NCBI GenBank assembly: GCA_964019335.1
Contig: OZ025671.1
Coordinates: 186,001-250,000 of the forward strand
Length of the DNA stretch: 64,000 nt
Origin: Diplonema japonicum
Taxonomy: Eukaryota > Protista > Euglenozoa: Diplonemea
Reading direction: 5' to 3'
Made by a program: the position numbers and the translations under genes. Position 1 is the stretch's first letter; the number at the start of each line of letters is the position of its first letter. Shown here one piece after another: positions 3,329-54,299 of this stretch. The notes beneath the pieces were generated by a model, which was not told the DNA's origin, did not search any database, and was given only the letters and a program-made list of their open reading frames with translations.

Positions 3329-3392
3329 TCACCGCCATTGACTCGTGCTCCCTCGCGAGGTGCTAGACGAAAGAGGTTTAATCCGGCTTCTG

Positions 3393-3424
<32 letters not shown>

Positions 3425-4075
3425 CCCCTGTTCCCTCTCCAAAACACACCCTGTGGACATTGTAGAGGAAACGCTCCCAGGACCACCAGTCCGCCTTGTA
3501 GAACGCGACATCGTCGACATCGTTTCATCAGCTCTGAAGGGCCTCGTGTCAGGGGGTGGACCAGGACAAGGCGGGCACCCGAGGATATGCCCTGAGTGGT
3601 GTCTTGCATACTCCTTTATACCCCCTGTCAGCACAAATATATTGTCAAGCCCCTTCTCAAAAAGCACATTAGCGATCCGCCCCACCGTCGACTCGTCCAT
3701 GTCATAAGCAACGATGATGTGCTTTTCTTTGTTTTTGAACGGATACATCTCAGGTATGAAAGGTGTCATAGCCTTGCACAGGGTGAGCGGGGGGTAGTGT
3801 ACAGAGCCATCTATTCTGCACTCTTCAAACTCTTCCCGTTCTCGTACATCGATGACAAGCACCTTCTCCTCGCAGTCGTCCTCGCTCATCAGTCGGAACA
3901 ACGTTCCTGGTTTTATCCTTTTGAAATGCTCCAAACCCCTCTCCGCTCTCGACTCCTTCGGCCGTGTGTTCAACACATTATTCCCCGTGTCGATGGTCGA
4001 TCTGGTGTCGTACTTCTTAACCGGCTTGATAATCTTATCCAAGATGTTCCTGTCACCTATTGCTGGTTTCGCCAT
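3329..4075 (-). CDS. CEP41: CEP41-like rhodanese-domain ciliary protein (228 aa; intron 3390-3449)
   Basis: KKYDTRSTIDTG N-terminal motif; VLVIDVREREEFEECRIDGSVHYP...YPFKNKEKHIIVAYD...GLDNIFVLTGG rhodanese fold. A 60-nt GTGTGT...(A)nGCAG intron removes the spurious poly-Lys. Confidence 0.8.
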
Positions 4076-5154: not shown

Positions 5155-8100
5155 TCAAAAGCACGAGGGTATGAACTCGCTCATATCAGGGAGGTAGTAG
5201 ATCTTTGGGAAGTACTGTTTGTTCGTGTGCAGGAATTTGATGACCTCCTGTTCGATCAGCCTTCTGGTCGCGGAGTTCTCCTTTGTCACGGACTCAAGAA
5301 GCTGATTTCGCGAAGACGCATCGATCTCACTTGCCCCAGACTGCTCAATGTACTTCGCGATAACAGACCTAAGCCTCTTTGTTTCGTCGTGCTCCTTGAG
5401 CTTCTCCCGCAGCGACGAGAAAAATGAGGCGAACGCAGAGTGGTACACAGCATAAGCCCACTGTAAAGTATTATTTTTCTTTCTTTTTTCTTTTTTTAAA
5501 ACAAACCCTTGATCGTAAATATTGTAACAAGTCCAAAGTTGCGCCTCGCGAATTTTTACCTTGTTCATAGGCGTACACCACGTTCACCATTGACTCCGGG
5601 AGGCCCACCAACGCCATAAGGTTGTGCATTTCAATCTCTTCGGACCCTAAGTATGTAATGCACTCGATGTACTTGTTGGGGCCGATGGACAGCTTGATGT
5701 AGCTGTCACCACGGTTGTTGTTCGACGTGAGGTCCATGCACTGCGCTGATACTTCGGAGTACTTGGCTGTTTTACACCGGAAGAAATAGTAATTGTTGGG
5801 AAGGTGCACCTTCGTGCTGACCTTTTCCGTGTATTCCGGTAAGGCTTTGGGTGCCATTGCTTGTTTTGACACTTCGCTCTGTGCGTCCGGTGCACCGTCA
5901 CCTGTCGTGTCTTCCTCGTCATCATCTTCATGAAATTCTTCAACACCGACGAATCCGAGAACGGTTTCCGCAAACCGAGTGCCGACTTCAAGTGGATTGA
6001 AGCTTTCGAATTCCTCGGAAGGTCCGAATCTCCCGCTGAACATTGCTATCGGCCCCACAGCGTAGATGCTTGGGTCGGTTGTGCGGTAGTTGTACTTCAC
6101 AATAACTCGCCCGTCGAACACAATGCTTCTCTTGTTGAGAGCCGACAGGATCTGGGAGTCGATGTCCTTCTCGTGACAGTAGATAAACATCGTGGCGGGG
6201 ATCTCCGTTATCTTGTTCTTCTTCTTCTCGTCATTGGTCTCCTGGCTCAGTAAGTACACCGCATTCAAATTATGGTCCTCATCGTATTCCATCCTGTCCA
6301 GGACGTGCCCTTTGTATGTCTTAGCTCCTTGCGACTCCATCAGCTTGTCTACACGATTGTCGATTTCCGAATCTCCAAATACCGATATCTCATCGGAACC
6401 TTCTTGTGGTAAGACGAGGACGAGTCGTGACGCGCTCAGTCCAATTTGTGTCAGTGATGTTGCCACGCTGTACACCTCCATGCTGGATCCATAGACGACA
6501 GCGTTGGAAAGCTCGTCCTCATACGCCTCGGACTCCCTGATGTGCTGTTTGATTTTGTGAATCTGCGACACTGAGCTTAGTTCGAACATTCCGTTTTTCG
6601 CTAGGTTCTTCGTCGCCAGCTCCTTCGGGATGGTGAATTGCCGCCCCGCCGTCACGATGAGGTGGTCGTACGGCTCCACGAACCCATTGTCTGTCACGAT
6701 GTACTTGTCGTTCCTCTCGAAGTCAATCATCGTGCCCTCGATGATGCGCACCTTCCCGCCTATCTTGAAGAGGATGTACTCCCTCTCCAGCCACGTCAGT
6801 GTGTCGACCGACCAGTGCTCCGAGTCCTGCGTGTTCGGATGAGGCAGAATGCCATCCCTCGACACCAGTACAATGTTCGCGATGTACAGGTACGGTATCT
6901 TGAGCCACGCGTATATGGCCGCCAGCCCAGTCGTCGACGCCCCGATGACGACAAGCCGTGAGTAGATTTTCGTCTTTTCATCGGACAGCTGTTTCTTGGA
7001 CATGAAATGCAGGCACACAAGCTCCTCGTTGTCGTCGACAAGAGGCGTCTCGTCCTCGCCGCTCTCCTCGATCATCCTTCGCGGCATAGAGAGGATAAGC
7101 TCTGCAAGGAGGGACTGAGACGCTTCGTCAATCGGCGTTAGGCAGTAGAAGAGAAGCTGCGTGCACGACTGCCGCATGATCTCCCGTATGAAGACACGTA
7201 TCCTGTTGCGGAAGGTAGGCTTCACGTAGAAGTGTGTCACAAGCAGCGACGGCATCTTCGCGGACAGCTCGTGTCGTGTGTCTTCAGCATCGGGGTTGAT
7301 GTCGGTGGCGGTGTAGTTGGGCTTCCCGTCGGGCACGAAGTTCACAAGGTGGTCAAGCTCAAAGTTCGCACGCAGATGGTGCACTTCCCCGTTTGTCAAA
7401 ACCCGGACGTTGCACATTCCGACCACTGTTCCCTCATAGTCGTGCAGGCAGTAGCTTAACAACATCCCTTGTTCTGCCTCTGCATCACCTTCCATAGGGT
7501 CAGTCTCTGTGGTTGTTATTGCCAGTTCCACGAACCGTGAACAAGTGTCGGCTGAGTAGTCCACCTGCGCTTCAAGCATGCCCTTAATCTCTTCAATATC
7601 ATTCTCTTCCGTGTTGCTCACCACTATGGGTAAGATGCTGTGCCGACATAAAAGCCAGGTCCCGTTCGGAAGCGTCAGCCCTTGCTTCAAAGGGAGGTAC
7701 GCGAAGTCGTGCAGCAAGGGGTGCTCCGTCGTGGTGTGTGGAAGTGTGATGAGGCAGTACTCAACGTTCTCGAACTGCGCGAAGGCGGGTTTGATGAACG
7801 ACGCTGCACGGCTTTCATATTCAGGGTTCAGGTAGAAGAAGGTGATCTGGAAGCTGTTCTGACCAACACGGTCGCGATCCGTGTGCCGGAGTTTGTTGTA
7901 CACATCAGTGTTGTAATGCTTCGTGGTGTAGGATTGGTTCTCGCTGCTCTTGACCATACACATGAGACCGACGATCTGACGGGTATCAGGGTCTTCCGCA
8001 ACAAGGACGGAGTGGTTGACATCCTGGTCTTCAAGAGTCTCGTCTAGAAAGAACTCCTCAGGGGGAGATGTCAAGACACCGTCGCCTGCTTGCAGCAACG

Positions 8101-9800: not shown

Positions 9801-12800
9801 TCAACTTCTCGACACAATGGACCATTGTCGCACAAGTGTTTTCATGGCCTTCGCAGGGCTTGCACTTGTTAAAGCCTGTTGTTGTTATATTATTTTATTT
9901 TCCGACTTTTTCTCCCCCACTTTTTTCTTCATTTTTTTTCCAAACACAAACCTGCTGTGCCATGGCTACGTGTTCCGCAGGGAGGTTCCAGGTATTTTGC
10001 AGCGCGAGTAAGAAAGCATCGGCACCTGCTGCAGAGTTGAGAAACACATAGAGATTGGCGATCTCACCCACCACAGAATAGCACTTTGCGTCGGAGGGAC
10101 TGAACGAAGGCTGCTGGATAGTGTGGAGGGTCATCGGAACAACTTGCTGTGCAAGAAAGCCCGAGAACCCAGGCAGCGTAGTGTACCATGACATGGCCAT
10201 CTTGGTGATGATCTGATAACTGGTCTTCGCCACGTCCATCTCCGGATGAGAGACACACCCCCGTGACAGCGACTCCAGAACCATGTTCAGTGTGGGCTTC
10301 GACTTCTCTGTAAGGAACAAGTGGATGCACTCCGGCTGAGCCGCCTGGATCAACAGTGCGTAGTACGCCCTAAGAAGGTCGAGGTGTTCCCTCGCCTGCT
10401 CTGAGTGCATGATGCTCACCTTCCCCAACCACTCTACGCTCGTCAGTTCGAACACCTTTCCGATCAACGGGACGAACAGCCCGTCCACAACAGGCACAGC
10501 CTCCGCCTTCATGCGTTGCAAGAGTTGTGTAGGGACTCGCACCAGTTTGCACGCATCTGTGATATCGCAGCTTCCAGTCATCTGTTCCACCAATGGTGTG
10601 ATGTACACCAGGACACCCGTCCCCAGCAGGTCGATCATGCGGTGTACAAAGAGAAGTACCTTCTCCCGCACGGACTGCACGTGGGCATATGCCGCACCGC
10701 ATGCCATCACCGCATGGGCGATCTCCTTCCACGCCTCGACTACCTCCCTGTTGACGCGTCCCATTGCCGGTGCTGACAACCCGCTGAACCCCTTCGACAG
10801 GTACGCCAAGTACAGCACCGTGTTCGCCACGCTGACGCCATACGCATCGGAGCGTGCCTGCAGCGCTGTCGTCAGGTTCGCTAGTAGTGGGCTGCTCATC
10901 ACCTTCAGGTATTTTTGGCTTTCAGGCAGCTTCGCTTCATTCTGCGAGATCAGCACGCCCAGCGTTTCAAACAGCGCGCATTTGTCATTCAGCTCCAACC
11001 CACTCGACGCCAGCAGCCTCTCCACGTTGGCCATAATGACGTCCACGCTGTCGGTCATTAGCTGCTTCGCTGACTTTGCCAGCTGCGAGAACGTGGCACA
11101 AGCCTTAGCCTTGACCTTCGGGTGGGGGTTCGCGACACCGCTGGGGCCGAGCGTAAGCTGCAGCAGCTGCGGCCTCTTCTCAGGGTACTGGATAAAGTAC
11201 TGGTAGTAACGCTCAACGACCTCGAGGAACGCAAGAGAGACGGCCTGTGGTGCTGTGGTGGGTGTTGGGTGCCTCATACCTGGTGCGTGTGCTGAGAAGC
11301 GATGCTCGAATCGAACAAGTCTGTCATCGTCTTGCAGAAGATGTTGTCAGTTTGTTTAAACAGAGCGCCTTTCGAGGTGCCGAGCTCCTGTGGTGGGTTG
11401 TATTAAATCCTGATGTGCATACCTCACCGAAGGTGTAGAGGATGCGCAGTGTGGCTTCCACCTGTGACCATGTGGGGCTTCCTGCAATGCAGGAGTTCAC
11501 ACGCTCAACGATCATGCGCATGACCATGTCTCTGTCCAGGGCTGCGATGTTCCTGAAGACGATGAGCAGCTGCTTCCGTAGCAATGTGACTGTGTTCTCG
11601 TAGTCGCTGGGTTGGTCGAAGTTGTAGGCGACCTGGTGGTACTCCAGCCTAGTCACCACGATGTTGAGGATGGACGGCAGGTGGCTGCGCGACAAGGCTG
11701 GCTCGGGGTGCTTCTTAAGCAGCTCGACGTACTTCCTGATGGAGTACTCGCAGACTTTCAACGAGATGCCGGAGTGGCCGCAGGAGAGGAGTTCGTAAAG
11801 CATCGGCAGGCATGTCTGCAGCATGTTCAAAGCGGTCGAGGCGGCGGGGCTAGGGCCCTGGGTCAGCATGCTGCCGAGGACGTCAATGAGCTCGAGGCAC
11901 ACCACCTGGCAGAGGTCTGTAACACGCGAGAGGAAGCCGTTCCCGTCGTCGAAGGACTCGTCACCTGCTGCGAGCATGGGACGCACTTGAATCATGGTCT
12001 GCGAGACCATCCCTGGCATGCAGTCTGTGACTCTAAGAGACTGCAGCAGTTGCAGCTTGGAGCTTGTATCTGCGATTTTCTTCTCGCACAGCTCCACGAT
12101 GCAGCCGATGGCATCGTCACGTAGATCGACACGTCCCACGAAGTGATACAGCATGTTGATCCAGTCGTCAGAGGACACAAGCGTGATGTCGATCCACGCG
12201 AAGTAGGGGCACATGACCTGCATGCACTGCCTTGTGAGGTCGGGGTGGGACTCATGATACTGAGAGAGGATGTGGTACCAGGTGTTCGTGATTTGTGGGA
12301 TGCATGTGAGACGCATGGTGTCCTTGATGAGAGTGTCCCGTGCACGCACATCGGAGTCGCGTTGGTCGCGCAGGTTGTCGACGATGTAGTTGTCGATGGC
12401 GTCAAGGGTGCGGAGCCAGAGGTCGATGAGCTGCATGCCTTTGGGAAGCAAGGCAAAGATCTCGTCGAAGAAGCTTCCCCACCTTGTGGGGTACCCGGAG
12501 TGCTGGAAGGCGATGACAAGAAGCTGCGCGAATTTGTTTTGAACAAATTGCATTTTTTGAAGGTCTAGATGCGGGCAGACCTCGGCTGCGAACGACATCA
12601 TTGCAGCCTCGAACTGTGTTTTTTCGCTGTCGGGAAGGGAGGCGTAGACACCCCCGCCGATGAGCTCCAGCAGCACCCCGCAACACCAGAAGATCTCCGT
12701 CGCCTCAAAAGATTCTTTAGGGCGGCGGAGGATAGAAAGACAGAATTCCCATATCCTGGGGTTTCTCTTCAAAGACCCTAGGTACTGTTCGGCTTCGGCC

Positions 12801-13747: not shown

Positions 13748-15193
13748 TTAAATCTTCTTCACACCGCTAATGTCCCCAGCAGATCTCACCGATTTAGCCG
13801 ATTTCTTAACCACCTTGAAGTCAGCCACGCTCCTCACGGCTCCAGTGGTAGTGTGCGCAATCCGCCCGATCCCCCCACCGAGCACAGAGGTCTTCTCCAC
13901 AGATGCACCTTGCATCCACGTTCGAACTTTTGACTTCACACCATTCCATCCAGTTTTTTGAATTTCCTATTTTTGAAAAAAAAAAAAAAATTAAAAATCC
14001 GTTAAATTTTCCATCAATTGTAATATACCATATTGCTCCTTGGTGCCTGCTGGATGCTGGGAATTTGGAAATAACGTCTGAAGGCCCCTGAACGGAGCAG
14101 CAAAGGAGGCATTATACCCCACACGGCCGACACCACGAACCCAAGAAGAACACCGGCAGAGTTCCCAGCGAAAATGTACATCCCCACAGCGCCCATGCAA
14201 CGGCCTCCCCATCGCTGGAGAACGTAGTACTTTGACTTAGTAGGCATGGACTGGGAAAGGGTCATCTCAGTGCCTGTTACAATGAGGACGTAGGCTATGC
14301 AAATTAGAGCGCCAGAGGGGTCGGCAGCCGACAGGTCTTTGAACCACAAAAACCCGCCCTCTTTCACACCTGGCTCATCCATAATGAGCCTCCTCACACA
14401 GTAGAACACCAACCCGAACGGGACCACGGCAGCTAACGACAGAAAGCTCAGCCATTCTTTGAAACCCCCTTTCTCGCAAACCGCTTTGATCCTAGCATCG
14501 TAGTTGTTCTTCACCAACGCACGCTCCTTGTCCGTCAGCGTGGAGTTCTGGAGCGCGCTTTGCTTCTGCTGCTTCAGCACGCCCAGCTCGGTCGTATACT
14601 GGGCTGTTTTTTTTTTTTTTTTTTTTTTTTTTTTTGTTTTTCATTTCTCCTTAATACATACACATTCTAATTGCATTTCGCGATGCGATGAGCTGGACAG
14701 GCAGCAGGGCGAATCGAATTGTACTGGACACCAACACAATGCACATCCACCATTCGAAGCCCAAATCGTGCAGCCCGTACAGGCCTCGGTTTATCCACCT
14801 GAACGGGGAGACCACGTCGAGCACCGTGTCCCACAAGCCGTCTACCTGCTCGAAGAAGGTGAGCTCTGGTTCTTCGTACTGAGAAGCGTCGTCCCTTATA
14901 ATGTTCTGAAGATCTTCTAGTTCCTGCTTTTCGAGTTCTTCAAGGGTGGTGGCAGAGGTGGAGGTAGTTGTGGTTGTTGTGGGGGTGGGGGTGGTGGTGG
15001 TGGTGGTGGCTGCCTCGGAGATGTCTTCTTTCTTTGCGAACGGATTCAAACTTCCTAAACTAAACATTCTAACTTGCAGCGGTGCCTCTCCCCGTGACAG
15101 TGCGCCCCACCGAACGGCACCCCCCACCAACCCCATTTGAGTCTGTGTCACTCCAGGCCTTATCAACCGCCTTAAGCCCCTGCCGCGGAGCAT
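13748..15193 (-). CDS. Mitochondrial Oxa1/Cox18/YidC-family insertase (441 aa; introns 14604-14661, 13967-14028)
   Basis: Arg-rich N-terminal presequence; LHDLGFEWWMCIVLVSSTIRFALLP; GGFLWFKDLSAADP. Two introns restore the frame. Confidence 0.85.
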
Positions 15194-16468: not shown

Positions 16469-19400
16469 TCAGTCGTCGTCCCTGTTAACCTCAAGGTAAG
16501 CATGCCCCCCTCGACTCCTCCAATACCAATGCCCGACACTCAAAAGAAAACCCATCAACAAGGCAGCGACATGAGCCACAGTTGTTATCGCATCAGACGT
16601 CACAGCGTAGTACACATCAGTGGACAAGAGGAGCAAGCCTGACACAACGACAAGGCGAGTCTCAACAACCGAAGACTTGAAAACACCTTGCTTGAGGTCA
16701 TAGGCAAGATGGCCCCACATGCTGTTCCACACAATGCTGATACCTGTGCAGCCTTCGATAAGGCACAGCCCGATTTGAAATGCCCATAGATATGCAAAAA
16801 CGCTGAACCACCAAAACAGGAGGCAACTGGTCTCGCCACGTATCATGTGTAAGACGGGAGCCACTAGCATCGCTGCCAACATCGTGTAATTGATGGCAAT
16901 GTCAGTCCCGCAGCCGTCGTAGGTTAGAATATCCTGCACGGTCATGGTGATGGATTGCCTATCTACGGGGGTTTTGTCGTTTTTGGGGAAGAAATCTGAA
17001 AGACAAAAAAAAAATAATAAGTTAGTGCAGCTTACTGTGTAAAACGCTGAAGTAAGAGAGTAGCTCATCCTTGCCAAGCCCCTCTTCGGCGGGGTGCTCC
17101 AAAAACGGGATGTGAAACTTCTTCGGTGTGCAGCTTGTAAAAGTTTGCAGAGCGCTGTTCACCAACTGGGCATCGTTGGTGAAGTGATAGAGCTGAGTCG
17201 ATGTAACTACATTTGAAGGTGGGATGATGAAGTAAGAGGCTGCAAGTTGAAAAATCTCGTACCACGCGTTCAGGGTGAGCCAGTGCGTGTGGTTGTACAC
17301 CTTCAGCTCGTTCGGAAAGATGCGTACGACATGCTCCCTGTCGATCATGCAGGACTCTACGAAGTTGCTTTTGTTTGTGTATCCATCGGGCGCGAAATCG
17401 TAGAAAGAGTTCATTAAGCTGCCCACTCGCCACACCATCTTCCTGAATAAAGAAACGCTGTACTCAATGGCCACGCCTTCGGGAAGGATCGAGAACAAGC
17501 CCTTTGTCCACAGGCAGGGGGAATCCATGGATGTTGTGTGGCGAAACCGCATCTGCGTTTCTAAGTAACACACCGCAGCCAGTTTCTCGGCAGCAAAGAC
17601 GTCAACATCCTTGCCAATAGCGTAGCTCACCGCACGCCAGAACAACCCCTTGTCGCATTCTGCCACACACCCGTTCCATCGCAGGTCTCCTGTATACAGA
17701 TCATACACCCTTGTGTCGATATTTCTAAATTCGTCTTCTGCTGAATCTTCGATGTACACTGTTTCGCACGACCTGATGAAGAGGTGTACTTTTTCTGAGT
17801 TTGACAGTTTGAATTCTGGGTTTATGGATCGGTATTCCGCCATGATGGGCTGCCAGTCCCACAGTGTGTCATTCAGCATTGTGGTCTCTTCGTCCGGCTG
17901 CATCATATGAACACTGAGGTTGTTCTCTTCGAGGAAGGCGCACAGTTCCTCTGTTCCATCGGACTGGAACAGGCTGTTGAGGTACATCATGTGCAGGACT
18001 GCGTCTAATGACCTGAAGAACGGTGCGTTCAGGAAGGCTGTCGCGCACTCTCCTAAAGGCACACCGACCGCCTGGAGAAGCTGCTCGGTTTTTCTTTGTG
18101 TTCCCTTCTGTGAAGCTTCGTCACACAATAGTTCCCACGGATGTTCCTTGCACAGCTTTAACTCGCAGACCGCCTCATACATGGACAGTAACTTCTCCGC
18201 CCAATCATTTCCCAAGCACTTCATCACGTAAGTCTCTAAACGACCCCCCTTACACCCCGTCAAGATACCTGCGTCTACTGCCACTGCCACCGTGTTCGCG
18301 TTCTCCATCATCTTCCGCTGCGGTGACATGTACAAGATATCTGCAAGATTTTGGTACGACTGTTGCGGCTTCCGTCTTAGCATCCGGATGAGCATTGGGT
18401 CGCACAGAGAATTACTAGCAGCGGCGTCGTGTAGCCTTTGGAGAGTGCAGCATTGTGACCACATGCACATGTAATGCCCTGCAGTTTCCATGGTCTCTAT
18501 ATTAAGCCATTTGCACAGTACAGGGAGCAAAACGGCTGTTATATCGCAGCTAACAAGCTCCTCGCACACAAGGTGTTTCAATATCTTGCGCGAGTCATGC
18601 TTGTCTTCCGCATTCTCAAAAGCGACAAGCAGCCCTTCCACATCGTTACATAGCTTCACAATGTTGTGCTCAACTCTGTTCCCTTCTATCTCGGCTACGT
18701 TCCATAAGGATGTTATGAACGCTGATCTTTCTTTATTGCTCTCTTGCACTAGAGAGGGGAATATTTCGATTATTCTTTCGTAGCACTCGTAAGGCGTCAT
18801 GTTGGGCTGCAGGGAGATTCGCAACTTGAGGCACATCACAGGAATGCTTTGTGAGAGCTTTCGTATGACGAGGTAGTCACGGAAGCGGCACATATCGAAC
18901 GGTTTGACCCCTGCGCTCTCCACGAAACCAATCAGCTCGTTGCAATCCTCTTCGTTATCGATGCCCACCAGCTGCTGCATACACGCAAAGTTTGATACTC
19001 GGCTCCGTTCTAATTTAGATTTCTCCACCACCACGTCTATCAGGGTCCGCAGCAGGTTATGCAGCGTGTAAGGGACATTCATGTCGATAACCTCGTTCAG
19101 TTCCGATTCCTCGAGATCCAGACCGCAGGTGGCGAGGAGCTGCGCAGACCATGTGTCGTTCAGACGGAATTCCGTGAAGCAGTTGTAAAGAACCTTCAAC
19201 ATGGTGAACACGATTTCTTTCAATGGCGGCTGCAGCACGCCGTACATAGTGCGCGTCAGGTGGTGCAACATAAGCCCGTCCACCTCATAGAAATTAGGTA
19301 GGCAGTGTGCCACATCGTCCCACGTTGTGCTTGCAACGAAGGTTATGTAGCTGTATGGGGTGTCGACGCAGAAGTGCTCGGAGGCGAAGTAGCAGTCCTT

Positions 19401-22642: not shown

Positions 22643-23343
22643 TCAGCTGAACAGTGCAAGTAGCTGCTCTTTCCGGGTGCCAACCGTGTTGGGGTCGCCA
22701 GTAACATCGCCGAAAACTCCTTGAGGGGACGTTGGGCTGGTCATTGAGGAACAATTCGTGCCCTGTCTGTCCAAATCACTTTCAGAGCCGGTGCTCTCAG
22801 AGTCCTCTACAACAGCCTTCTTCTCTTTTTTCCGAGATTTCTTCTCGCTTGTTCGTCCGTCCCGTTTCTTCGACTCCCGTTTCAGCCAAGATTTAAATGT
22901 TGGTGGTTTCTTAGAACCACATGACTCCATTCGTGCATACTTCCCCTTTATAACCTCTATTACCACCTGGTCATCTGTGTTCTCTGCAGGCCGACACACT
23001 CCCTTCTTAGGTTTTGCTTCCAGGTACTTTTTTTTATTTTTATTTTTTTGTTTGGGTGTTGGTGGCATACCTCCCTCGCCCTTTCGTTCCCCATCTTGTC
23101 CATCCATCTGACCTCGTCAGGCCCCCACTTGTCCAGGTTTAAGCTCTTCACTTTTGAAATGTGGGTTCCCAAATTTCTGTGAATCCCGGAGCACCTGATG
23201 CACACGAAAATCCCCCAGTTGACGACAGCCCAACGGGGTGCGTTTGCAGAGCAGTCCATACACTCCGAGTTCCCAGAATCTTTGGTCATGGAAATGAGGA
23301 GGCTGCTGAGCTGCTCTGGGGTTGAGTCCGGGTTAATCTTCAT
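22643..23343 (-). CDS. ArfGAP zinc-finger protein (218 aa; intron 23027-23070)
   Basis: NSECMDC...PRWAVVNWGIFVCIRCSGIHRNLGTHISKVKSLNLDKW...MGNERA. A 44-nt intron ending in an A-run plus AG restores REYLEAK...KY. Confidence 0.9.
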
Positions 23344-23450: not shown

Positions 23451-24709
23451 CTAACGTGTCGGGTTGTTTTTGTCCGGAACCATAGCATTTTTGTCCATTT
23501 CCATTGCCATTTCAGCTGCTATTCTGTTCCCTTCGTCAAGAGCTCGTCTTTGAGCTTCTTCTTCCGCTTCAAAGAGATACCCAAGCTCCTTGTAGGCAAT
23601 CTTCTCAGCTGCATCGTGGTTGCACAGGCGCTGCCTCTCCCTGACGACCTTGCGGGCCAGCTCGCGCATGGTGTTGAAGTGAAGCGGGAGAATCTTTAAA
23701 AGTGCGGCTGAATAAATTGGTACATTTTGTGTCACCATACCATCATTGGCCCCCAGCGACGCTAGGTGGTCCAGCCTGTCAACCCCAAAGTCGACCAGCT
23801 TCTGGAAGTAGCCATATCGGGCGTATTCCAGTTCGTTGATGATAATTTCAACATCCTTTTTTTTTTTTTTTTTAAACTCCCTTCTTTTTCTTACCTTTGC
23901 ACCTCTCCCCCTATATATCCACGCAGGCCTCTCATCAAAGCGCTTCGGGACACTATCACTTTCGATGACTGGTTCTACTTGCGATGGGTGCGCGTCGAAG
24001 CGCACACCGTTTAACCGGACCTTTTTTTTATTCTTCTTTATTTTATTATTTTCCATCCTTTCTTACCTGTGCTGGCGAATCGGGTGCACTTCCAGGGACG
24101 CTTGTGATGACACCAAGCGTACCTTGCGGGATCACCTGACTGTTGCGGAGGACGATTCGCTTCACAGCACGCACTGCACCACCCACAAGGAACTGAAAAT
24201 GTTTGATTTTTTTTTTTTTTTTTTTAAATTTCTCACACCAGAGGTACAAAGTCCAAGGTAATGTGGTGTATCAGTGAGGTGCGGTGGTCTCGTGCCACGA
24301 TGACCCTTTGGAAGTCACCGCTGTTCCTGATGCCGACTCCGTTGCATCGCCGTATCGTGCGGCCTTTGTACTTTCCTAGCCCCGCTGCCTCTGCAGGGGA
24401 CCCTTTGTCCACAGCTGTGATCATCAGGGAGTCCGTGTACACGAACCCATATCGCCTGGTGGCAGGGTCTTTCTGGACAACTATTTCATCATAAGATATC
24501 TGGGTGAACCCGCCTTGCTCGGGGTGTAGCACGCTGGTCACAAACGGCAGCATCTGTGACGCGCCAATCATGAACCCTAACATCATCACCCACACGCACG
24601 CACCCCATCTTCTGTAGGTTCTGTGTAGGTCCCATTTCTCTTCTGTATCTTCATAATCAGACAGCAGATCCTGTTCTTTACGTTTTTTTCTACGGTGCTT
24701 GCTTGCCAT
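23451..24709 (-). CDS. Single-pass membrane protein with PDZ-like domain (375 aa; introns 24193-24238, 24021-24066, 23856-23894)
   Basis: TM segment, then YGFVY...ITAVDKGSPAEAAGL...IRRCNG PDZ motif. Three phase-0 A-rich introns link three track ORFs into one frame. Confidence 0.75.
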
Positions 24710-31450: not shown

Positions 31451-33452
31451 GAGAGTACCCTTGATGAATCAGTGTGGAGGTCAGATATCTGTGAGTGCTT
31501 TTGTTTTGTTTTGCGGGCATACGTTCGTGCGTGACAGGATGGCTGTGCTGGTTGCGACGAAGTCCTCCTCCCCCACATAGCAGGAGCCTTTCCCCACTTC
31601 CCAGAAGTAGCCGATGAGCCCTTGCAAAACGGCGATGGCATCCGAAGGGTTCAGGTACGCGGCGGAGTAGCCCATGGAGGCGAGGGAGACGGCGATGAAC
31701 TTCACGTCCCTGCTGTGCACCACGATCGGGCACCTCAAGCCCTCCCCCGCCGTCCCCGCTGTCTCCTCCACCACCTTTTTCGCAAGGGACACGAGACACG
31801 GAGGCCCCGCGTTCAAGACGTACACCGCGAACCCCCAGTCCTTCTCCTGCAAGAGCTCTACCTGTGCCCGGAAGTAGCACCGCTTCACCTCGTCCCGACA
31901 CTTCTCGGGAACGTTGTCCAGGAAGACCCCGAGCCCCATCGGGAGCACGCAAGGATGTGTCACCCCTTGCACCTCCGCCGCCGTGAAGATGCACTTGTAC
32001 AGGTTCTTCACCCGCTCGTAGAAGTCCGTCTTCTCCCGAGGACCCTTCCAGTCCTCGAACTTCCCCCGCAGCGGCTGCGTCGCCTCCCACTTGGCCGACA
32101 CCGTGAAGTACTTGCTCCCCTCCACCACTGTGCTCAGGTCCGTGCAGAAGTCGATCCCCGCCGCCGTGAGGAAGGTCAGAGGCCGCTCCGTTTTCCCGCA
32201 CAGCTGGTTCGACACCCCCTCTGCTCCCCCCACCATGAAGTAGCCCTTCTGGGTCTGGCACACGCTGCTCGACAACTCGTTCAGTGAAGTCGCCAGCACC
32301 CGATTCACATGATCCTCGTCCTTGAACCCGTACCCCTTGAAGTCCCGCCGCACCTTCTCGATGAAGGCTTGGTGTTCCGAATCGATTTGTGGTGCGTGTT
32401 CCAACTGTTTCAGAGAGATCTCTGCGCTCTGTTGTGTTGTGTTGTGTTGTGTTGTGTTGTGTTTGTAAAAGAAAAATAAATAACAAACAAACCTCCAGCT
32501 TGCCTTGGTAACGGTCCTTCTGATATGCCCATTTCTCGTACTCCTGTACCTCCTCACTGTGGGGTTTTTGTGTTGGTCGTTTCTTTTTTTTCTATTTTTC
32601 TCTTCTTCTTCCTCTCGTCCGCTCACACACCTCGTTGACTTCTCACTCACCTCCTTCGGGCTCGCGAGGAGGTCCTGCAGCAACCCCATGCACCGCTTCA
32701 TACATTCCTCCAACATGGACCTCAGGTGTATCGTCTGCTCGGGCTTCCCGATCTCCGCAAGGGCTTGAACCCGCCGGTCTGAATAGTAAGCGACGTGCTT
32801 CGTGGTGAGGGCCGCCAGGGAGGTGTAGAAGGCCGGGGGAAAGGCCGAGGGGTCACACACAACACGACCAGATGCCTCCAGGTCCCGCGCCTCCGCCACC
32901 GTCATCGAGAAGGTGCAGGAACCCCACACCGCAAGGGGGTCCTCTTCCCCCTCCCCCTCCCCACACCGAATCCCCTGCGCCCTCATCGTCTCCATCATCG
33001 TCTCCGCATTGATGCGCAGCTCCCTCCGCGGGTCCTCTGCCGCCTGCTCCTCCAAACTCTTCTCCAGCTGCACGTCCGGTAGCCGTCCAATCCGTGTCCT
33101 TTCATCCTCTTCTTCTTCCCCTCCGCCCCTCCCCTTCCTCCCCAAGAGCCGCAGGAGCGTCGTAGTCGGCCGCAGCCGCTTGTCGTACGCCCGCACACAC
33201 CCGCAGATCGCGTGCGTGTTGTACGCCGCCCCGCTGTGCACAGGGCCCGTCTTCCCCCGTACCTTGTACGAGCTGAACCCTCCCAGGCCCGCGAACGCCT
33301 TCCGCAGCCCCGTCTCCGCTTCCCCCTCAAGCTCCCCGTACACGTATAGCTCGTTCCCTTCCTCTACTGCGATGCGCTGCATGGTTGCCCCACCCTTTCC
33401 TTGTCATGGGAATAGTTAAAGGGGGTGTCCAAAGATGGAAGGAACAAAGTAG
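31451..33452. repeat. 2002-bp direct repeat, copy 2
   Basis: Identical by eye to 25831-27832, including the (CAACA)n intronic microsatellite. Confidence 0.95.
31481..33382 (-). CDS. Macrodomain/PARG-like protein, copy 2 (introns 32557-32630, 32429-32492)
   Basis: Same translation as 25861-27762. Confidence 0.6.
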   Translation of the reverse strand: MQRIAVEEGNELYVYGELEGEAETGLRKAFAGLGGFSSYKVRGKTGPVHSGAAYNTHAICGCVRAYDKRLRPTTTLLRLLGRKGRGGGEEEEDERTRIGRLPDVQLEKSLEEQAAEDPRRELRINAETMMETMRAQGIRCGEGEGEEDPLAVWGSCTFSMTVAEARDLEASGRVVCDPSAFPPAFYTSLAALTTKHVAYYSDRRVQALAEIGKPEQTIHLRSMLEECMKRCMGLLQDLLASPKEVSEKSTRCVSGREEEEEKNRKKRNDQHKNPTVRRYRSTRNGHIRRTVTKASWRFVCYLFFFYKHNTTQHNTTQQSAEISLKQLEHAPQIDSEHQAFIEKVRRDFKGYGFKDEDHVNRVLATSLNELSSSVCQTQKGYFMVGGAEGVSNQLCGKTERPLTFLTAAGIDFCTDLSTVVEGSKYFTVSAKWEATQPLRGKFEDWKGPREKTDFYERVKNLYKCIFTAAEVQGVTHPCVLPMGLGVFLDNVPEKCRDEVKRCYFRAQVELLQEKDWGFAVYVLNAGPPCLVSLAKKVVEETAGTAGEGLRCPIVVHSRDVKFIAVSLASMGYSAAYLNPSDAIAVLQGLIGYFWEVGKGSCYVGEEDFVATSTAILSRTNVCPQNKTKALTDI

Positions 33453-33788: not shown

Positions 33789-34228
33789 TCATTCCATCGG
33801 TGCCCCATAGGCATCAGGGAGGCGCTCCACAGTGTACTTGTGCTTCGATATGTACATAATGGGGACACCAGGAATCTTCCGCAGCCTTCTCTTCAGGTCC
33901 TTATCCGCTGTGGCCACGATGTACACAGGGAACTGCGACACAGTGTTCACAATACAGTCATCGGCGTAGGTAGTTCCACAGGTTAGCCTTTTGTACCGTG
34001 GGTCCTTGGCCATTCTGAGGGCCACTTTGAATTTGTCCCCCAATTTCTCGAGCTCTGCGATGACGCAGGAGCAGATGTACACCGAGACCTTGGCGTAGAG
34101 ACAGTCCATGCAGCCCTTTATTATATCGATCTTATTTTGCATCGAAAAATTGATAAAATTGGTATCGATCAGCACCCGGTAAGGTGGGCCCAGTGCTTGG
34201 TTGTGTCTCAAGTACATATTGCTTTGCA

Positions 34229-34267
<39 letters not shown>

Positions 34268-34482
34268 TGAAATACCTGTTGAACTCGCTTCACAGACTGC
34301 TCGTCGAATTCCGCGGCGCCCTGGTCGGCAAACCGGCTTCTTTGCTCTGTTTTCTTTTCCGCAGCTTTTTGCTTTTTATCCGCTTTGTCCTGTTTTTTTT
34401 TCTCTTTTTATTTTCTTCTTTTTTTTCTTCGTACCTTATTCAAGATTTTCTTTTTTATCGCAAACATTTGCTTTCGCCCCAT
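33789..34482 (-). CDS. FCF1: rRNA-processing PIN nuclease Fcf1/Utp24 (200 aa; introns 34390-34434, 34230-34275)
   Basis: [21 protein letters not shown]...YADDCIV...[24 protein letters not shown]. Two poly(A) introns add [20 protein letters not shown]...KRVQQ in frame. Confidence 0.95.
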
Positions 34483-35546: not shown

Positions 35547-37136
35547 CACCTTGGATAAAAAAGCAAGGATTTCACCACTGTTGGCTGACGGGAACTCGAC
35601 CTGGAAATCCAACTGCTTCTTGTACGCCTCCCGAACGTCTTTGCCATTGATCTTCAGCGAGGTCTGTTAATTTTCCCTTTTCCCCCCCCCCCCCTCTCCT
35701 ATTCATACCATGAGCACATCCCCCTTCACACACGGCTTTAGATCAGGCAGCGCTGATAAGAGCTCGTCACGCTTCACTTGCTGTATCAAGTGTCTTCCCG
35801 GTACTTCACTACCAAAGCATTTAATCGAAGAAATTACAGCGGCCTGCTTCCAGTAGTACTGAACTATCTGCTCCCCTTCATTATCGTACTTCAGAATCGC
35901 CTGTTGCATAGCAGTTGTAAGCACAGTCCGGTTAGACTGTGGAAGCGGTGTGCTGGGGTGAGGCGTGCCTTTGCCTTCAAGATGGTCTAGATCTAGCTCC
36001 CAACCTTTTTCTTCCGGTAGTTCCCGGCCGCTGCCTATTGTACCTTCATTGTTCTTCCAAAATGAGGTGAACGTTGAAACCGAATTGAGAATGAGTAGCA
36101 CGACCTCGGTAGTCCGTCTTGACAGCTTAAGCCCGTTGGTGATTACCGATTGCAAGAAAGGCTCTAACTTGGGATGATTGGGGAGCTTCGATTCATCGAG
36201 GTTTAACAGCATAGTTGCAATGCACCCTTCCAAACCGAGAATGTCGGACATATTGGCGACATGTTTTGAACCCTCATTCCATTCTTCTTCGGTGAACCCT
36301 ACGGGGGTGGCGGTGAGAACGTTGCCTTTCTTGTCGCATTTGCACGATTCGAAGATCACGTCATAGATGCCGAAATCATGAAAAACCTTCAAACACCTTC
36401 CTGGGCTCGGCCCTGTAAGCATCTTCTTCAGCTCGATTCCGACCCTCTCCCTGGATACTTTCTTTTTCAACGATTCATGAATTTCCTTGTCGCGAGCGGC
36501 TTGTACTATATCACCATGGACCTCGCAGTCGAATCGTGCTGCGAACCGCACACATCTTAACAGCCTTAAAGGATCATCGTGAAATGTAATCGATGGGTCT
36601 AAGGGTGTACGGACAACTTTCTTTTCTAAATCAACCAAACCAGATGTAAAATCCTCCACCTCTTCAGTGTGTAGGTTGTAGAACAGGGCGTTGATGGTGA
36701 GGTCGCGTCTTCGCGCGTCTTCCAATGGTGTTCCTGGGCGGACGACAGGGATTCTGCTGTCGGCGTAGTCCTCGGCTCTGAGGTTCACCAAGTCAATTGC
36801 TTCGCCAAAAATGTGTGTTGTTGCGGTCTCAAGGTGTTTGGACTGTTCAGGGTTGACCTTTATGACTCCTACGTGGTGGGTTTCCATGTCATGCTCTACC
36901 TGGTATTTTGTTATGTATGAAGCGAACATCTCTCCTGTCATGGCCTTGCCGTCCACGTCGCCCTCTAAGGCGACGTCGATATCGTTGGAGACCTTGCGCA
37001 GCATCCTGTCTCTGACCCAGCCCCCGGCTACCCTTAGGGTGCAATTCAGTTTGTATCTGTCGTTGACGGCCAACAGCAATTTGAATATTCTTGATTCAAG
37101 CTCTGTTGCGCCGAGAGGGAGTAGCGATCGTTGCAT
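35541..37136 (-). CDS. CCA1: CCA tRNA nucleotidyltransferase, class II (516 aa; intron 35664-35708)
   Basis: LRVAGGWVRD...DID, NPEQSKHLETA, DLVNLRAE, EDARRRDLTINALFYN, DDPLRLLRCVRFAAR, KVSRERVGIE. A 45-nt purine-rich intron adds the last exon TSLKINGKDV...LSKVV*. Confidence 0.93.
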
Positions 37137-38977: not shown

Positions 38978-41416
38978 TTAAGCCTCTTTTTTGTCCATTT
39001 TGAGAACGTCCTCTTCCCACCTTTGGAGGGTAAGCTGTGCAGCTTCCTCAAAATCGTAGCAAGGGGTGTAGTTAAGGAGTTTTTTGGCTTTCTCTCCACA
39101 AGTAGAGAAGGTCATGGCAGCAGTGTCAAGACAAGCAGGGGTCATGATGTCAAGGCTGATTGAGGCGAGAGTGATGTGTCCCTTAGTGATGTAATGAATG
39201 GCCTCTACGACTGCGGCAATGATCCAGAGGAGGCGAACAGGAGGCCGGACACAGACACCGACCCTGAAGCGAGCGTAGTGTCTGAAGGTGGCAACCATCT
39301 CACGGTAGCTACGTGACTCACCTGGGGAGATGTTGAAGGCTTCGCCAGCGACCTTAGTATCCCTTTCGTTGAGCCTGGCCTCGCCCTTGAGCAACCCAAG
39401 CACCACCTCGTCAACGTACACCCAGTCAAGCTTCACATCAATGGGCACAACAAGGATAGGGACCGTGAAGACGCGCTCCGCGATCTGTTTGTCCTTCGCC
39501 CCGAACACCCCAGAGCACGGTCTGCAGGCCACTGTCATCATACCCTTGTTGTCGTTCGCCTTGCATACCATCTGTTCCGCTTCTGCCTTTGTCCATGAGT
39601 AGTGGTTGTGCGACACAGCTCTTGTCGCGTACGGGCACGTCTCGTCCATCTTCCCGTCTTTGCCGTGTTTTTTCTCGAAGTCTGCGATCAGTTTCGGTGT
39701 GCACATCACATTCGAAGTACTTGTCTGGACAAAGGTCGTGACGCCAGCCCTCTTCGCCTCCTCCAGCACGATCCTCGTGCCGTCGATGTTCACCCTCGAC
39801 GTCGTTATCGCTTGGAAGTCCAGCCTCTCCCAGAACCTTATCATCGCGAACGTTGTGATAACTGTTTCGACACCTTTCATCGCCTGCGCCACTTCGTCCT
39901 TTTTGCACACGTTGCCCTTGATGTACGTCACGTGAGGGTTCCCCTCCCACGGGTTGTGCGGCGAGATGTCGAACGCGCGAATCTTCGTTTCGCCCCTCTC
40001 GAGTAGCTTTTCCACCAGACGCTGTCCCACAAAGCCCACACCCACCACTAGGTACTGCCTGCCTGTACGCGGGCAGTCAGCACTGGCTTTCTCCCATGAC
40101 TTCTCCTTGAAGGACCCCCACGGTGCCTTGGGTGGGATCACAGACGGGCGGACCTCACGGACTTCTGCAGGCCACATCAACACAACGAAGATGAAGAACC
40201 CTACACCGCCACCGATCCACGCCGCAGGCATGGCCACGAAGATGGTGAGGAACCCAATAGCGGAGAGGGGGATGACAGGCATCTGCCCTTCAACCTGGCC
40301 CTCTTGCTTGTAAGCACGGTTGCTGCTCGAGTCGGACCAGGTCTGCTCAAAGAGGACACCGAAGCCGAACCACGAGGCGTAGGACAGCAGAACGAGAGTG
40401 TGCACGGAAGACCATGGGGACGTGGCAGCCTCGGTGACGGCTTCCACACCAGCGAAGATCTCTGCGAAGCTCACGACGTGCTCAACACGAGCGCTGAGCG
40501 CGAAGGAGACCCATTGGAAGAACACCGTCGAGAAGAGGGTGATGAGGATTGTCAGCACTGACAGGTTCCAGTTCTTCCTCATGTTGCTCTTATTGCCGCG
40601 GCCGCAAGGGATTGAGTACAGCAGCTTGTTCATGGCGGAGCACGTTACAATACCCAACACGAGTGTCAGGGTGTGAGTGCCCGATGCAAGCTTCGAGAAG
40701 GAGTCTGGGCGTGTGATGGTCGCCTCGCTGAACGTTGTGCCGAACAAGCCTGCAAGCACCGAGAAGCGGGAGCAGTAGTTCCACAGCGGGACGCAACCGA
40801 ACCTGAAGAAGACGATCGATGACACGTAGAAGACGCAGATACGCGGGAGGTACCTTGCCACCACCGCGGGCACGACACCGTGGTCCTCCTGACCTAGAGA
40901 AGCGAAGGCCATCGCAGTGGCGAACCACAGCGTCATGTGCATCGTAGCAAGCGCACCGAAGTAAAACGACTCGTCCGCAATGTCCTCTGGGTAGTGGAAC
41001 GCCTTCGCGAAGAACCTGCACCCCACGTAGTTCTGCTCGTAGGTCTCAATCATCAAGAAGAACACAGCAGTGGCGAAGAGGGCGGTCACAAGCAGCCCAA
41101 TGATCAAGCCGACGAAGACGGACTTGATCCTCTTCAGAGAGTTTCCCATTACAACACCGCTCAAAGCTATCCCAGTGTGTACCCCCGCAGCACCAATGAT
41201 GGCGGGCCACCTCAGTTCTTCATCAATCCCAGAGCCAGGGATTAAACCGACCTCCTTGAACCATGCACCTACCCCAAGGTACTCGTGGACAAGCACATCC
41301 TGCCACACGCCAAGAACACAATCCTTGAACCACAGCACGGCTACATAGTATATAGCAGTAAGCTGGAAAATGGTCTGCCACTGGCTTGAGACGTGGCTAG
41401 GAGGTGGGTCGTGCAT
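38978..41416 (-). CDS. 3-beta-HSD / NSDHL(Erg26)-like SDR fused to a large N-terminal multi-TM domain (812 aa)
   Basis: YLVVGVGFVGQRLVEKLL...RAFDI, VNIDGT, TSTSNV, HYSWTKAEAE (YxxxK), RPCSGVFG, DWVYVD, GEAFNIS; preceded by about 420 aa of hydrophobic helices. Confidence 0.85.
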   Translation of the reverse strand: MHDPPPSHVSSQWQTIFQLTAIYYVAVLWFKDCVLGVWQDVLVHEYLGVGAWFKEVGLIPGSGIDEELRWPAIIGAAGVHTGIALSGVVMGNSLKRIKSVFVGLIIGLLVTALFATAVFFLMIETYEQNYVGCRFFAKAFHYPEDIADESFYFGALATMHMTLWFATAMAFASLGQEDHGVVPAVVARYLPRICVFYVSSIVFFRFGCVPLWNYCSRFSVLAGLFGTTFSEATITRPDSFSKLASGTHTLTLVLGIVTCSAMNKLLYSIPCGRGNKSNMRKNWNLSVLTILITLFSTVFFQWVSFALSARVEHVVSFAEIFAGVEAVTEAATSPWSSVHTLVLLSYASWFGFGVLFEQTWSDSSSNRAYKQEGQVEGQMPVIPLSAIGFLTIFVAMPAAWIGGGVGFFIFVVLMWPAEVREVRPSVIPPKAPWGSFKEKSWEKASADCPRTGRQYLVVGVGFVGQRLVEKLLERGETKIRAFDISPHNPWEGNPHVTYIKGNVCKKDEVAQAMKGVETVITTFAMIRFWERLDFQAITTSRVNIDGTRIVLEEAKRAGVTTFVQTSTSNVMCTPKLIADFEKKHGKDGKMDETCPYATRAVSHNHYSWTKAEAEQMVCKANDNKGMMTVACRPCSGVFGAKDKQIAERVFTVPILVVPIDVKLDWVYVDEVVLGLLKGEARLNERDTKVAGEAFNISPGESRSYREMVATFRHYARFRVGVCVRPPVRLLWIIAAVVEAIHYITKGHITLASISLDIMTPACLDTAAMTFSTCGEKAKKLLNYTPCYDFEEAAQLTLQRWEEDVLKMDKKEA

Positions 41417-41591
41417 GGTTGGTACTTTTTTTTTTCTTTTTTTTTTTTCCCTCTTGTAGTTGCGTTTATGAAAAAAAAAGCCCTCTAAGGTAAGAGAAAA
41501 AAAACTGGACAAAGAGGAAGAACAAAAAAAAAAAAGAAGAAAAAGAAATAGAGAGCGGAAAAAAGAAAAAAACAGACCCCCCCACGTTTGC

Positions 41592-42536: not shown

Positions 42537-42600
42537 CGCCTGCTATGGGGGATTTCAGTGAGAAAATATAAAAAAGAGAATCTCGTAAAAAAAAAAAAAA

Positions 42601-43384: not shown

Positions 43385-43417
43385 AAAAAAAAAAAAAAAA
43401 AAAAAGACGCCTTACTT

Positions 43418-44965: not shown

Positions 44966-45019
44966 GTTTTCACATCTATCTCCTGTGTGGTGTAGATGAA
45001 GAATGATCACAAATGGAAG

Positions 45020-53449: not shown

Positions 53450-54299
53450 TTAATTCGGATTCAGCCATGGTTTTGCCGCCCTGCCCGTCCCCGCTGTCCG
53501 TCCCTTCTTTGCCATCGGTTTATTGCTCCCGTCCCGTTTCTGGAAACTGTCCTTACTTTTCCCCTTCATCCCTCCTCCGTATGGTGTCTGATTCAGCTTC
53601 GACTGTTTTTTTTCTTTTTTTCTCTTTTTTTTTTCCCCCTATCTCGTACCTGGAAGCCAGTTAGTTGTTTAATCTGACCCTCTGCGGATTCCTTCCTGAG
53701 CTTTTCTTCTTTTTTCTTGTCGTTTTCGAGCTTCTTTTTCTTGGACGGGTTGTAGCGGTGCCTCCCTTTAGCTTCTATAAGCGGGTCAAGAGTCGCATTA
53801 ATGTGATTTAAAATTGCAGTACTAGGATCCTCCTATGATTGGGATGGTGTGGTGGTGTTTTCATCTATTGTTTCTTTGAATACCTTGAACTCATCGCAGC
53901 CCAGGACGTAGCTGAAGTGCTCGACCTCTTTTTTCACAGTCTCACTTCGTTGTTCTTCGGTCATCGGTGTGCTTTTGAAAATTTGCGGTTTCGGTGCATT
54001 CGCTTCCTTCTCTTTTTCCCCCGTCACCATTTTCATGACATCCTTCTTGATCCTGTCCGTCTTCACCCCTTTCCCAAGCTTCGACAAAGGCTGCACTGTT
54101 CGCCTGTTCTTCCCCCTGTACTTCGCCGGGCCCGTTGTGTTTGCTGCATATTCAGTCAGTCTCTTTTTCGCTGTGGTTTGTTCCCCCCCACCCAGATTTC
54201 CATACTTAAAGCCGACTGCTTCCCTTGAGGAGCCGCTTCTTTATTTTTCTGCCTCGTCAGCAGCACTCTCTTCGCCTTCTTGTTCAGGGTCTTCCCCAT
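53450..54299 (-). CDS. Slx9/FAM207A-like ribosome biogenesis protein (238 aa; introns 54171-54205, 53833-53883, 53603-53649)
   Basis: Three GT-AG introns give one basic protein starting MGKTLNKKAKR and containing KEVEHFSYVLGCDEFK-EDPSTAILNHINATL, the Slx9-type C-terminal motif. Confidence 0.7.

Follow-up and report, generated by a model that had tools for sequence, protein, structure and literature searches.

Adenine-rich introns at the FCF1 locus and in the surrounding genome of Diplonema japonicum

The FCF1 gene of Diplonema japonicum is interrupted by two short, adenine-rich segments, the second of which is dominated by a single run of 35 adenines. This raises the question whether such segments are introns and, if so, how a 3' splice site is chosen when adenines stand where a pyrimidine tract would be expected. 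An earlier note had listed eleven A-rich or purine-rich segments of this kind, two of them in FCF1, as introns in the stretch of 64,000 nucleotides that was analysed here and is referred to as the window. Almost all long open reading frames of the window are located on the minus strand, a layout that is compatible with a polycistronic gene array. An Rfam scan of the window gave no match. Throughout the analysis, exons were searched singly, and the transcript proteins obtained in this way were then mapped back to the DNA.

Removal of the adenine-rich segments

The FCF1 gene is encoded on the minus strand in three exons. Exon 1 (34435..34482) comprises 16 codons beginning with the ATG start codon, and its translation corresponds to the N-terminus of P0001, a transcript-derived protein of D. 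ambulator (200 aa). It is followed by intron 1 (34390..34434; 45 nt, GTACG...CAG, 73% A), the interior of which is all purine except for two pyrimidines, and by exon 2 (34276..34389; 38 codons). Intron 2 (34230..34275; 46 nt) consists of GTATTTCAAT, A35 and G; it uses AAG as the 3' splice site and shows AGGT at both flanks. Exon 3 (33789..34229) contains 146 codons and the stop codon and encodes the Fcf1/PIN domain. When exon 3 alone served as query, transcript-derived FCF1 proteins of five diplonemids were retrieved (best match D. ambulator, 93% identity), and Pfam PF04900 is annotated on these matches. Removal of both introns restores the reading frame, as had been claimed before, and yields a product of 16 + 38 + 146 aa. 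The resulting 200 aa are collinear with P0001, with 0 indels at either junction, and also with transcript-derived proteins of four other diplonemids.

A PDZ-like gene, likewise on the minus strand, contains four introns, all of which were validated by transcripts. Intron 1 (24193..24238; 46 nt) carries an A19 run, intron 2 (24021..24066; 46 nt, 67% A) ends with A8 and G, and intron 3 (23856..23894; 39 nt) ends with A17 and G. Intron 4 (23708..23740; 33 nt, GTATGG...TTATTCAG) is not A-rich and was not among the introns listed in the earlier note. A profile-free search with the last exon led to P0122, a Trinity protein of D. japonicum itself (EukProt EP01064_Diplonema_japonicum), which is 100% identical to the window across all exons and omits all four introns, including intron 1, precisely. 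In P0124, an isoform of the same Trinity gene, two introns are retained, and the A17 run of intron 3 is translated in frame; thus, the length of this homopolymer is reproduced by an independent short-read (Illumina) RNA assembly. In intron 2, internal AAGs located further 5' go unused, so that the choice of the site needs more than the first AG past a minimum length.

The other listed segments are also located on the minus strand. In the CEP41-like (rhodanese) gene, an intron of 60 nt (3390..3449) ends with A31 and GCAG. It is in frame and free of stop codons, and therefore its removal is not forced by the frame; the segment is missing from the orthologous transcripts P0145 and P0147. The intron of the ArfGAP gene (23027..23070; 44 nt) ends with A8 and G. 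Its removal restores the frame, and the ArfGap Pfam match breaks at profile position 79 of 117, which is the precise end of the exon. For the introns of the Oxa1-like gene (14604..14661; 58 nt, A29+CAG, phase 1), the CFAP61 gene (5461..5506; 46 nt, purine-rich) and the gene of the CCA-adding enzyme CCA1 (35664..35708; 45 nt, purine-rich with a G13 run), the support is confined to frame restoration, and for that of the SLX9-like gene (53603..53649; 47 nt, interior purine only) to the gene model. The 5' part of the Oxa1-like intron was found nowhere else in the genome, and the exon downstream of it gave a weak match to 60KD_IMP. The exon upstream of the CFAP61 intron carries the domains CFAP61_N and CFAP61_dimer, and the intron of the CCA-adding enzyme contains an in-frame stop codon.

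All eleven listed segments begin with GT and end with AG, have a length of 39–60 nt and are rich in adenine or in purines on the minus strand, which is the coding one. Four of them end with AAG directly behind the A-run, as had been stated before. The junctions in FCF1 and in the PDZ-like gene agree exactly with transcript-derived proteins, and precise removal was seen in such proteins for FCF1, the PDZ-like gene, the U2AF65 gene (described below) and the CEP41 orthologues. There can hardly be any doubt that the eleven segments are real introns. Artefacts would have to be homopolymer errors of the assembly or errors of the gene models, in which case the proteins would start downstream of the segments or read through them. 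It is true that the assembly is apparently a long-read assembly (132 contigs), in which homopolymer lengths are error-prone, and that the CEP41-like segment can be read through. Nevertheless, such an origin is extremely improbable. It is refuted for the introns of FCF1 and the PDZ-like gene, since these are skipped exactly by transcript-derived proteins, and the A17 run of PDZ-like intron 3 is no assembly artefact, as it reappears in frame in the intron-retaining isoform P0124. Furthermore, 87–94% of the sampled words of the region were found in five runs from two studies, and the trait has been published from RNA-seq split reads (PMC12621601, see below).

Intron signals and composition in the window and in the genome

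The introns had been regarded in the earlier note as a candidate for an undescribed system. This view did not hold, because the A-rich introns of D. japonicum have already been described by Thakur et al. in 2025 (RNA 31:1826, PMC12621601), and the window provides instances of them and no new phenomenon. According to the available text of that paper, 10,131 RNA-seq-supported introns of D. japonicum were analysed, of which 98.3% are GT-AG introns; the analysed introns have a median length of 41 nt, with (G)/GTATG at the 5' site and CAG at the 3' site. The branch motif YTRAY occurs in only 13.9% of these introns. Upstream of the 3' site A is the commonest base, and in the published logo A is conserved in the region of the pyrimidine tract (PPT). 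The same text reports that U2AF1/2 and the snRNAs are present, that the trait was shown by RNA-seq split reads and RT-PCR, and that minigene reporters are available for diplonemids. As far as this text extends, the introns of the window show no essential difference from the published ones: they come from the same species, share GT-AG, GTATG and CAG as well as a length of about 41 nt, and have A as the commonest base before the 3' site. Compared with the available text of PMC12621601, the present analysis adds the frequencies of intron classes, the difference of introns from intergenic DNA, the anchoring of an A-run at the 3' end of a long intron, the loss of U2AF65 RRM2 motifs, comparisons of orthologous introns, and the motif GTATTT(C)A(n).

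The window set consists of 23–24 curated introns, which were ascertained in part on their A-runs. Since this list is biased, a composition-blind sample was taken elsewhere: 61 introns were predicted by a composition-blind gene-model program in twenty 10-kb pieces (200 kb) of other contigs. Introns were called by a dynamic-programming gene model, and the plus-strand output was discarded as an antisense artefact. In the last 20 nt, the window introns (n=23) contain 56% A, 17% C, 16% T and 11% G, and the predicted introns (n=61) contain 36% A, 27% C, 23% T and 14% G. All 24 curated introns begin with GT and end with AG. Among the 61 predicted introns, 72% have GTATG at the 5' site and 70% have CAG at the 3' site; their length has its mode at 32–35 nt and its median at 43 nt. 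An A-tract was found in about 11–15% of the predicted introns and a T-tract in 3–5%.

A pyrimidine tract is a typical, not an absolute, feature of U2-type introns. In the present sets, a pyrimidine tract of at least 8 nt in the last 25 nt occurred in only one of 24 window introns and in four of 61 predicted introns (7%). The branch motif YTNAY was detected in 5/24 window introns and 25/61 predicted introns, and the stricter YTRAC in 1/24 and 7/61, respectively. No conserved branch motif was found in the A-rich introns of the window and the sample. Classical introns do occur: one of 40 nt on the minus strand (16996..17035) has CTAAC and a T10 pyrimidine tract, and another (20253–20304) has a U-rich tract. 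Two further introns, one of 35 nt on the minus strand (11245..11279) and one at 11388–11422, are CA-rich, and this class is the commonest in the genome sample. The typical intron is thus a GTATG...ACAG unit of about 33 nt with a mixed or CA-rich spacer, and the poly(A) introns are a conspicuous minority.

These results bear on the proposal that 3' splice sites are defined by another rule in this lineage. It stands insofar as most introns lack both a pyrimidine tract and YUNAY, so that the definition of the 3' splice site departs from the textbook U2AF65/PPT rule. Poly(A) as the general rule has to be abandoned, because the poly(A) introns are a minority next to introns of the CA-rich, mixed and classical types, the last with a U-rich tract or CTAAC.

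The adenine bias is specific to introns. On the coding strand, the intergenic DNA of the window contains A and T in equal proportions (30% each), with 41 A8+ and 49 T8+ runs, whereas the window introns contain 48.5% A and 19% T, with 14 A8+ and 3 T8+ runs (introns versus intergenic DNA, Fisher p=0.007). The equal proportions and symmetric runs between genes rule out that transcribed non-coding DNA in general has a compositional strand bias. Homopolymers are very abundant throughout the genome (about 8–10 A10+ runs per 10 kb and equally many T10+ runs), and a window-specific excess was ruled out, since equal densities were found elsewhere. Raw material for A-runs is therefore at hand everywhere, yet only the A orientation builds up in introns, despite the presence of A- and T-runs genome-wide.

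The position of the runs is not arbitrary either. A-runs of at least 13 nt directly adjoin the 3' splice site, as A(n)G, A(n)CAG or A(n)GCAG, in six of seven short introns. The gene for U2AF65, the four introns of which were confirmed by the transcript P0127 that maps exactly to the genome, gives a further example; like P0122, P0127 is a EukProt protein of D. japonicum, and the exact match of both identifies the species. Its introns are an A-rich one of 37 nt, a C-rich one of 36 nt, one of 1429 nt that also ends with A22 and CAG, and one of 38 nt with T8. CA-rich and U-rich introns are neighbours of A-tract introns, and in the case of the U2AF65 gene the different types occur even inside one gene.

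Splicing machinery and choice of the 3' splice site

Loss or alteration of the splicing factors had been considered as a background of the unusual introns. Several copies of U2 snRNA were identified, which are canonical (matches to RF00004 of up to 141.5 bits); their GUAGUA branch-binding box is intact, and an altered box was thereby ruled out. An orthologue of U2AF65 with three RRMs is also present, and its best matches among PDB structures are all human U2AF65. With GUAGUA kept in U2 and a three-RRM orthologue of U2AF65, a loss or rewiring of the core machinery is not supported. What was found on the side of an alteration concerns RRM2 of U2AF65, from which the aromatic RNP residues are gone. 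A search with the Pfam SF1-HH profile gave no match, a result without bearing on the presence of SF1.

The canonical RNP motifs are kept in RRM1 of U2AF65. In RRM2, three aromatic residues are missing as judged by motif positions only: F is replaced by V in RNP2 (LVMSGF for LFIGGL), and Y by C and F by V in RNP1 (KACCVFEF for KGYAFCEY). This loss is common to D. japonicum, D. ambulator, Rhynchopus, Flectonema, Hemistasia and a Logan diplonemid; in plants, which were included in the comparison of U2AF65, these residues are not lost. The pattern would agree with a relaxed reading of the pyrimidine tract throughout the clade. Since the loss also occurs in diplonemids with C-rich tracts, it offers no explanation for adenine in D. 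japonicum specifically. A change of the U2AF65 RNP motifs specific to D. japonicum was ruled out; D. ambulator has the same motifs, and those of the other diplonemids compared are similar.

It is fairly probable that in D. japonicum a conventional spliceosome picks tiny introns by their 5' site, their length and (C/A)AG followed by G, and that the spacer is permissive, with A-runs expanding against the 3' site. The segments would then be ordinary U2-type GT-AG introns, in which the choice of the 3' splice site would have become independent of a uridine-rich tract in the D. japonicum lineage. The conserved signals would be three in number, namely a 5' site of the GTATG type, a length that is short and varies little (mode 32–35 nt), and (A)CAG or AAG with a G behind it. 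Between these signals, the spacer would be free to be of low complexity, that is CA-rich, mixed or sometimes U-rich, and in a minority of introns an adenine run would have expanded directly at the 3' splice site, probably by replication slippage. Introns would tolerate or favour A-runs over T-runs. Possible reasons are that adenine runs may be unstructured, that they may offer a branch adenosine anywhere within the run, and that they would not mimic the pyrimidine tract with AG found upstream of most genes.

The 3' anchoring of the runs and the asymmetry between A and T would equally follow from a tract that acts as a positive signal and is read by a factor. The A-tract would then replace the pyrimidine tract as the signal of the 3' splice site; it would be bound by an A-binding protein, for example an RRM protein of the nuclear poly(A)-binding type, or by a re-specified U2AF65, and U2 would be recruited to a branch A within the run. 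Long A-runs at the 3' splice site in six of seven short introns and in the 1429-nt intron of the U2AF65 gene would fit this idea, as would the enrichment of A-runs and depletion of T-runs in introns relative to intergenic DNA, the absence of the canonical stacking residues from RRM2 of U2AF65, and the conserved A in the PPT region of the logo in the available text of PMC12621601. However, an A-tract is present in only about 11–15% of the introns and most spacers are mixed or CA-rich, and the U2AF65 gene has A-, C- and U-type 3' regions side by side. A re-specified U2AF65 is further opposed by its RNP motifs, which do not differ from those of D. ambulator and resemble those of diplonemids with C-rich tracts, and orthologous introns of relatives work with U-rich or CA-rich sequence (see below). 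A positive role of the A-tract is therefore regarded as quite improbable.

Recognition by length and terminal motifs is also suggested by the analogy to the tiny introns of other protists. Introns have about 25 nt in Paramecium, 15 nt in Stentor and 18–21 nt in the Bigelowiella nucleomorph. Like these, the introns of D. japonicum are very short, fall into a narrow size range and lack, or show only weakly, a pyrimidine tract and a branch consensus. The ciliate and nucleomorph introns are AT-rich within AT-rich genomes, whereas the genome of D. japonicum has a GC content of about 49%, and its introns show a strand-specific A bias with homopolymers of up to 35–59 nt.

Within the Euglenozoa, C-rich or CA-rich 3' regions are found in the conventional introns of other diplonemids, according to the available text of PMC12621601, and of Euglena gracilis (PMC11170887). 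GT-AG ends, CAG, a non-U tract before the 3' site and a retained U2-type spliceosome are common to these introns and those of D. japonicum. In the other Euglenozoa, however, the tract still consists of pyrimidine (C) or of CA, whereas it is pure purine in a subset of the D. japonicum introns. In Euglena, a C-rich tract is moreover common to outrons and cis-introns (PMC11170887). The window appears to differ from this situation, as the regions upstream of genes carry pyrimidine tracts and the introns are without them.

A pyrimidine tract of at least 10 nt was detected within 260 nt upstream of the ATG in 15 of 17 genes, and in many cases a purine tract lies between it and the start codon. In kinetoplastids, such upstream pyrimidine tracts mark the acceptors of the spliced leader, and to our knowledge every mRNA of D. 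japonicum is trans-spliced. The upstream pyrimidine tract with AG may thus be a putative mark of spliced-leader acceptor sites. If this applies, the avoidance of U-tracts in cis-introns could prevent confusion with trans-splice sites.

Age and origin of the poly(A) introns

Orthologous introns were deduced from genomic open reading frames of other diplonemid assemblies that read through them. In P0146, a genomic open reading frame of CEP41, an insertion rich in F, V and L, equivalent to U-rich RNA, with an end like CACACAAACAG, is located at the position of the A31 intron of D. japonicum; the orthologous intron is U-rich and CA-ended. P0121, an open reading frame of FCF1 from a Flectonema-like genome, extends through an intron of about 65 nt located where FCF1 intron 1 lies in D. 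japonicum; judging from its back-translation, this intron would begin with GTATG and have a mixed body and an A/C-rich end. According to these comparisons, two A-rich introns, that of CEP41 and FCF1 intron 1, are positionally ancient, and their composition has changed in place. At the position of FCF1 intron 2, P0121 is contiguous, and the Flectonema-like genome contains no intron there. FCF1 intron 2, which has the purest A-run, therefore appears to be lineage-specific, by gain or by loss.

FCF1 intron 2 is also a member, with one mismatch, of a motif GTATTTC+A(n) that recurs in the genome. GTATTT+A15 is present in 98 copies versus 0 for the reversed control, and GTATTTC+A12 in 18 copies versus 2. 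About 100–180 units of GTATTT(C)+poly(A) are spread over the genome, and both flanks of these loci are unique. GTATTT is a rare 5' site overall, but before A-runs it is as frequent as GTATG. Many GTATTT+A(n) loci finish in (C)AG after 30–56 nt, with complex flanks on either side. Among the 18 GTATTTC loci, four are predicted intron starts in coding sequence; 11 are sense and five antisense to local genes.

Accordingly, FCF1 intron 2 and the other poly(A) introns of highest purity might be recent gains, produced by the insertion or repeated formation of a GTATTT(C)+poly(A) unit at AG/GT-like sites in the manner of a minimal introner. The unit would supply its own GT, and the A-run together with the following G would form the AG. 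Introners are transposon-derived intron families (reviewed in PMC11282704). The units resemble them in being short and dispersed, with unique flanks and with some copies located in genes as predicted introns, and flanking AG/GT would permit restoration of the exon upon excision. Besides the copy numbers relative to the reversed controls, the unique flanks, the four predicted intron starts and the many loci ending in (C)AG, this possibility is favoured by FCF1 intron 2 itself, which has AGGT at both flanks and no counterpart in the Flectonema-like genome, whereas intron 1 has one, and by locus L038, where a direct repeat of 10 bp surrounds an A39 run.

Several observations speak against it. L038 is the only one of 19 GTATTTC loci with a direct repeat indicative of a target-site duplication, and in contrast to introners the units have neither terminal inverted repeats nor consistent target-site duplications. 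The flank repeat of FCF1 intron 2 is limited to AGGT, which equals the protosplice consensus. The similarity between copies is confined to GTATTT(C) and the homopolymer, so that just 6–7 specific bases are held in common. Five of the 18 loci are antisense to genes and the majority is intergenic, and the absence of the intron from one relative could be due to loss instead of gain. The 5' parts of other A-run introns are unique and unrelated, two A-rich introns are positionally ancient, and A-runs genome-wide lack an endonuclease-like TTT/AAAA signature. A recent gain of the purest poly(A) introns from such units is, on balance, rather unlikely.

Poly(A) tails of retroelements as a general origin were rejected on similar grounds, namely the lack of target-site duplications, the unique 5' parts and the two introns at ancient positions. 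The L1-type target signature TTT/AAAA was absent around A-runs, which genome-wide are mostly located inside purine-rich tracts.

If units of this kind do give rise to introns, PPT-independent recognition of the 3' splice site would let a GTATTT(C)+poly(A) unit splice at once, and this would constitute a minimal, homopolymer-based route to intron gain. In D. japonicum, a conventional U2 snRNA and an orthologue of U2AF65 coexist with introns in which the "pyrimidine tract" consists of adenine alone. The trait amounts to a natural experiment on the dispensability of the textbook 3' splice-site signal.

Homopolymers and the GTATTT(C)+poly(A) motif

In the window and in the twenty 10-kb pieces from other contigs that served as a genome sample (L010-L029), the frequency of homopolymers was about 500-fold above the expectation from base composition. 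Runs of A10 or longer occurred about 8-10 times per 10 kb, and T10+ runs were equally frequent. Nearly all homopolymers were located in non-coding DNA, and the A-runs were mostly embedded in A/G-rich tracts.

Genome-wide in the D. japonicum assembly, GTATTT+A15 was found in 98 copies vs none for the reversed control, and GTATTTC+A12 in 18 copies vs 2 (e.g. the loci L030-L047 and, with one mismatch, FCF1 intron 2 at window positions 34230-34275). The flanks were unique for every copy; part of the copies were predicted introns, and others were intergenic, in both orientations. At one of these loci (L038, G000:C32:72661-75679), a 10-bp direct repeat (GGTATTTCAA) was present on both sides of an A39 run at about position 1500, which is antisense relative to the neighbouring genes. 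This repeat looks like a target-site duplication bordering a poly(A)-only insertion.

Filler and splicing of introns

Long G-runs (G13, G20, G12) were located directly behind the 5' splice site in several mini-introns (window 35664-35708; L029, position 9281 of the minus-strand copy; U2AF65 locus L009, 3844-3881) and are further low-complexity filler. The U2AF65 gene also contains an intron of 1429 nt (L009 = G000:C19:430300-434800, positions 1383-2811), which ends with A22+CAG and in which several ORFs (100-290 codons) are distributed over both strands. In the window, the gene-model program yielded implausibly long 'introns' at 38980-46636, where LINE-like remnants had been seen in the first reading of the sequence alone; this stretch was excluded from all intron statistics.

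Two tandem duplicate ORFs of 633 codons (window 25861-27762 and 31481-33382, minus strand) possess introns of 74 nt (purine-rich, then CA-rich) and 64 nt (T-rich, followed by a (CAACA)n repeat), which are identical between the copies. The duplication is recent.

In the Trinity isoform i2 of the PDZ-like gene (P0124, window 23608-24056), two A-rich introns were kept in the transcript, and a 33-nt intron was spliced to a 3' site 14 nt downstream, resulting in a frame shift. Therefore, either splicing of the mini-introns is noisy or pre-mRNA was captured.

Regions upstream of start codons

For 17 genes of the window, the 260 nt preceding the start codon were inspected; in 15 of them, a pyrimidine tract with a length of 10-43 nt was located about 60-220 nt before the ATG. 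Directly before the ATG, most of the same genes possessed a purine tract of 10-47 nt. These tracts possibly correspond to the region of the spliced-leader acceptor and to a 5' UTR that is rich in purines.
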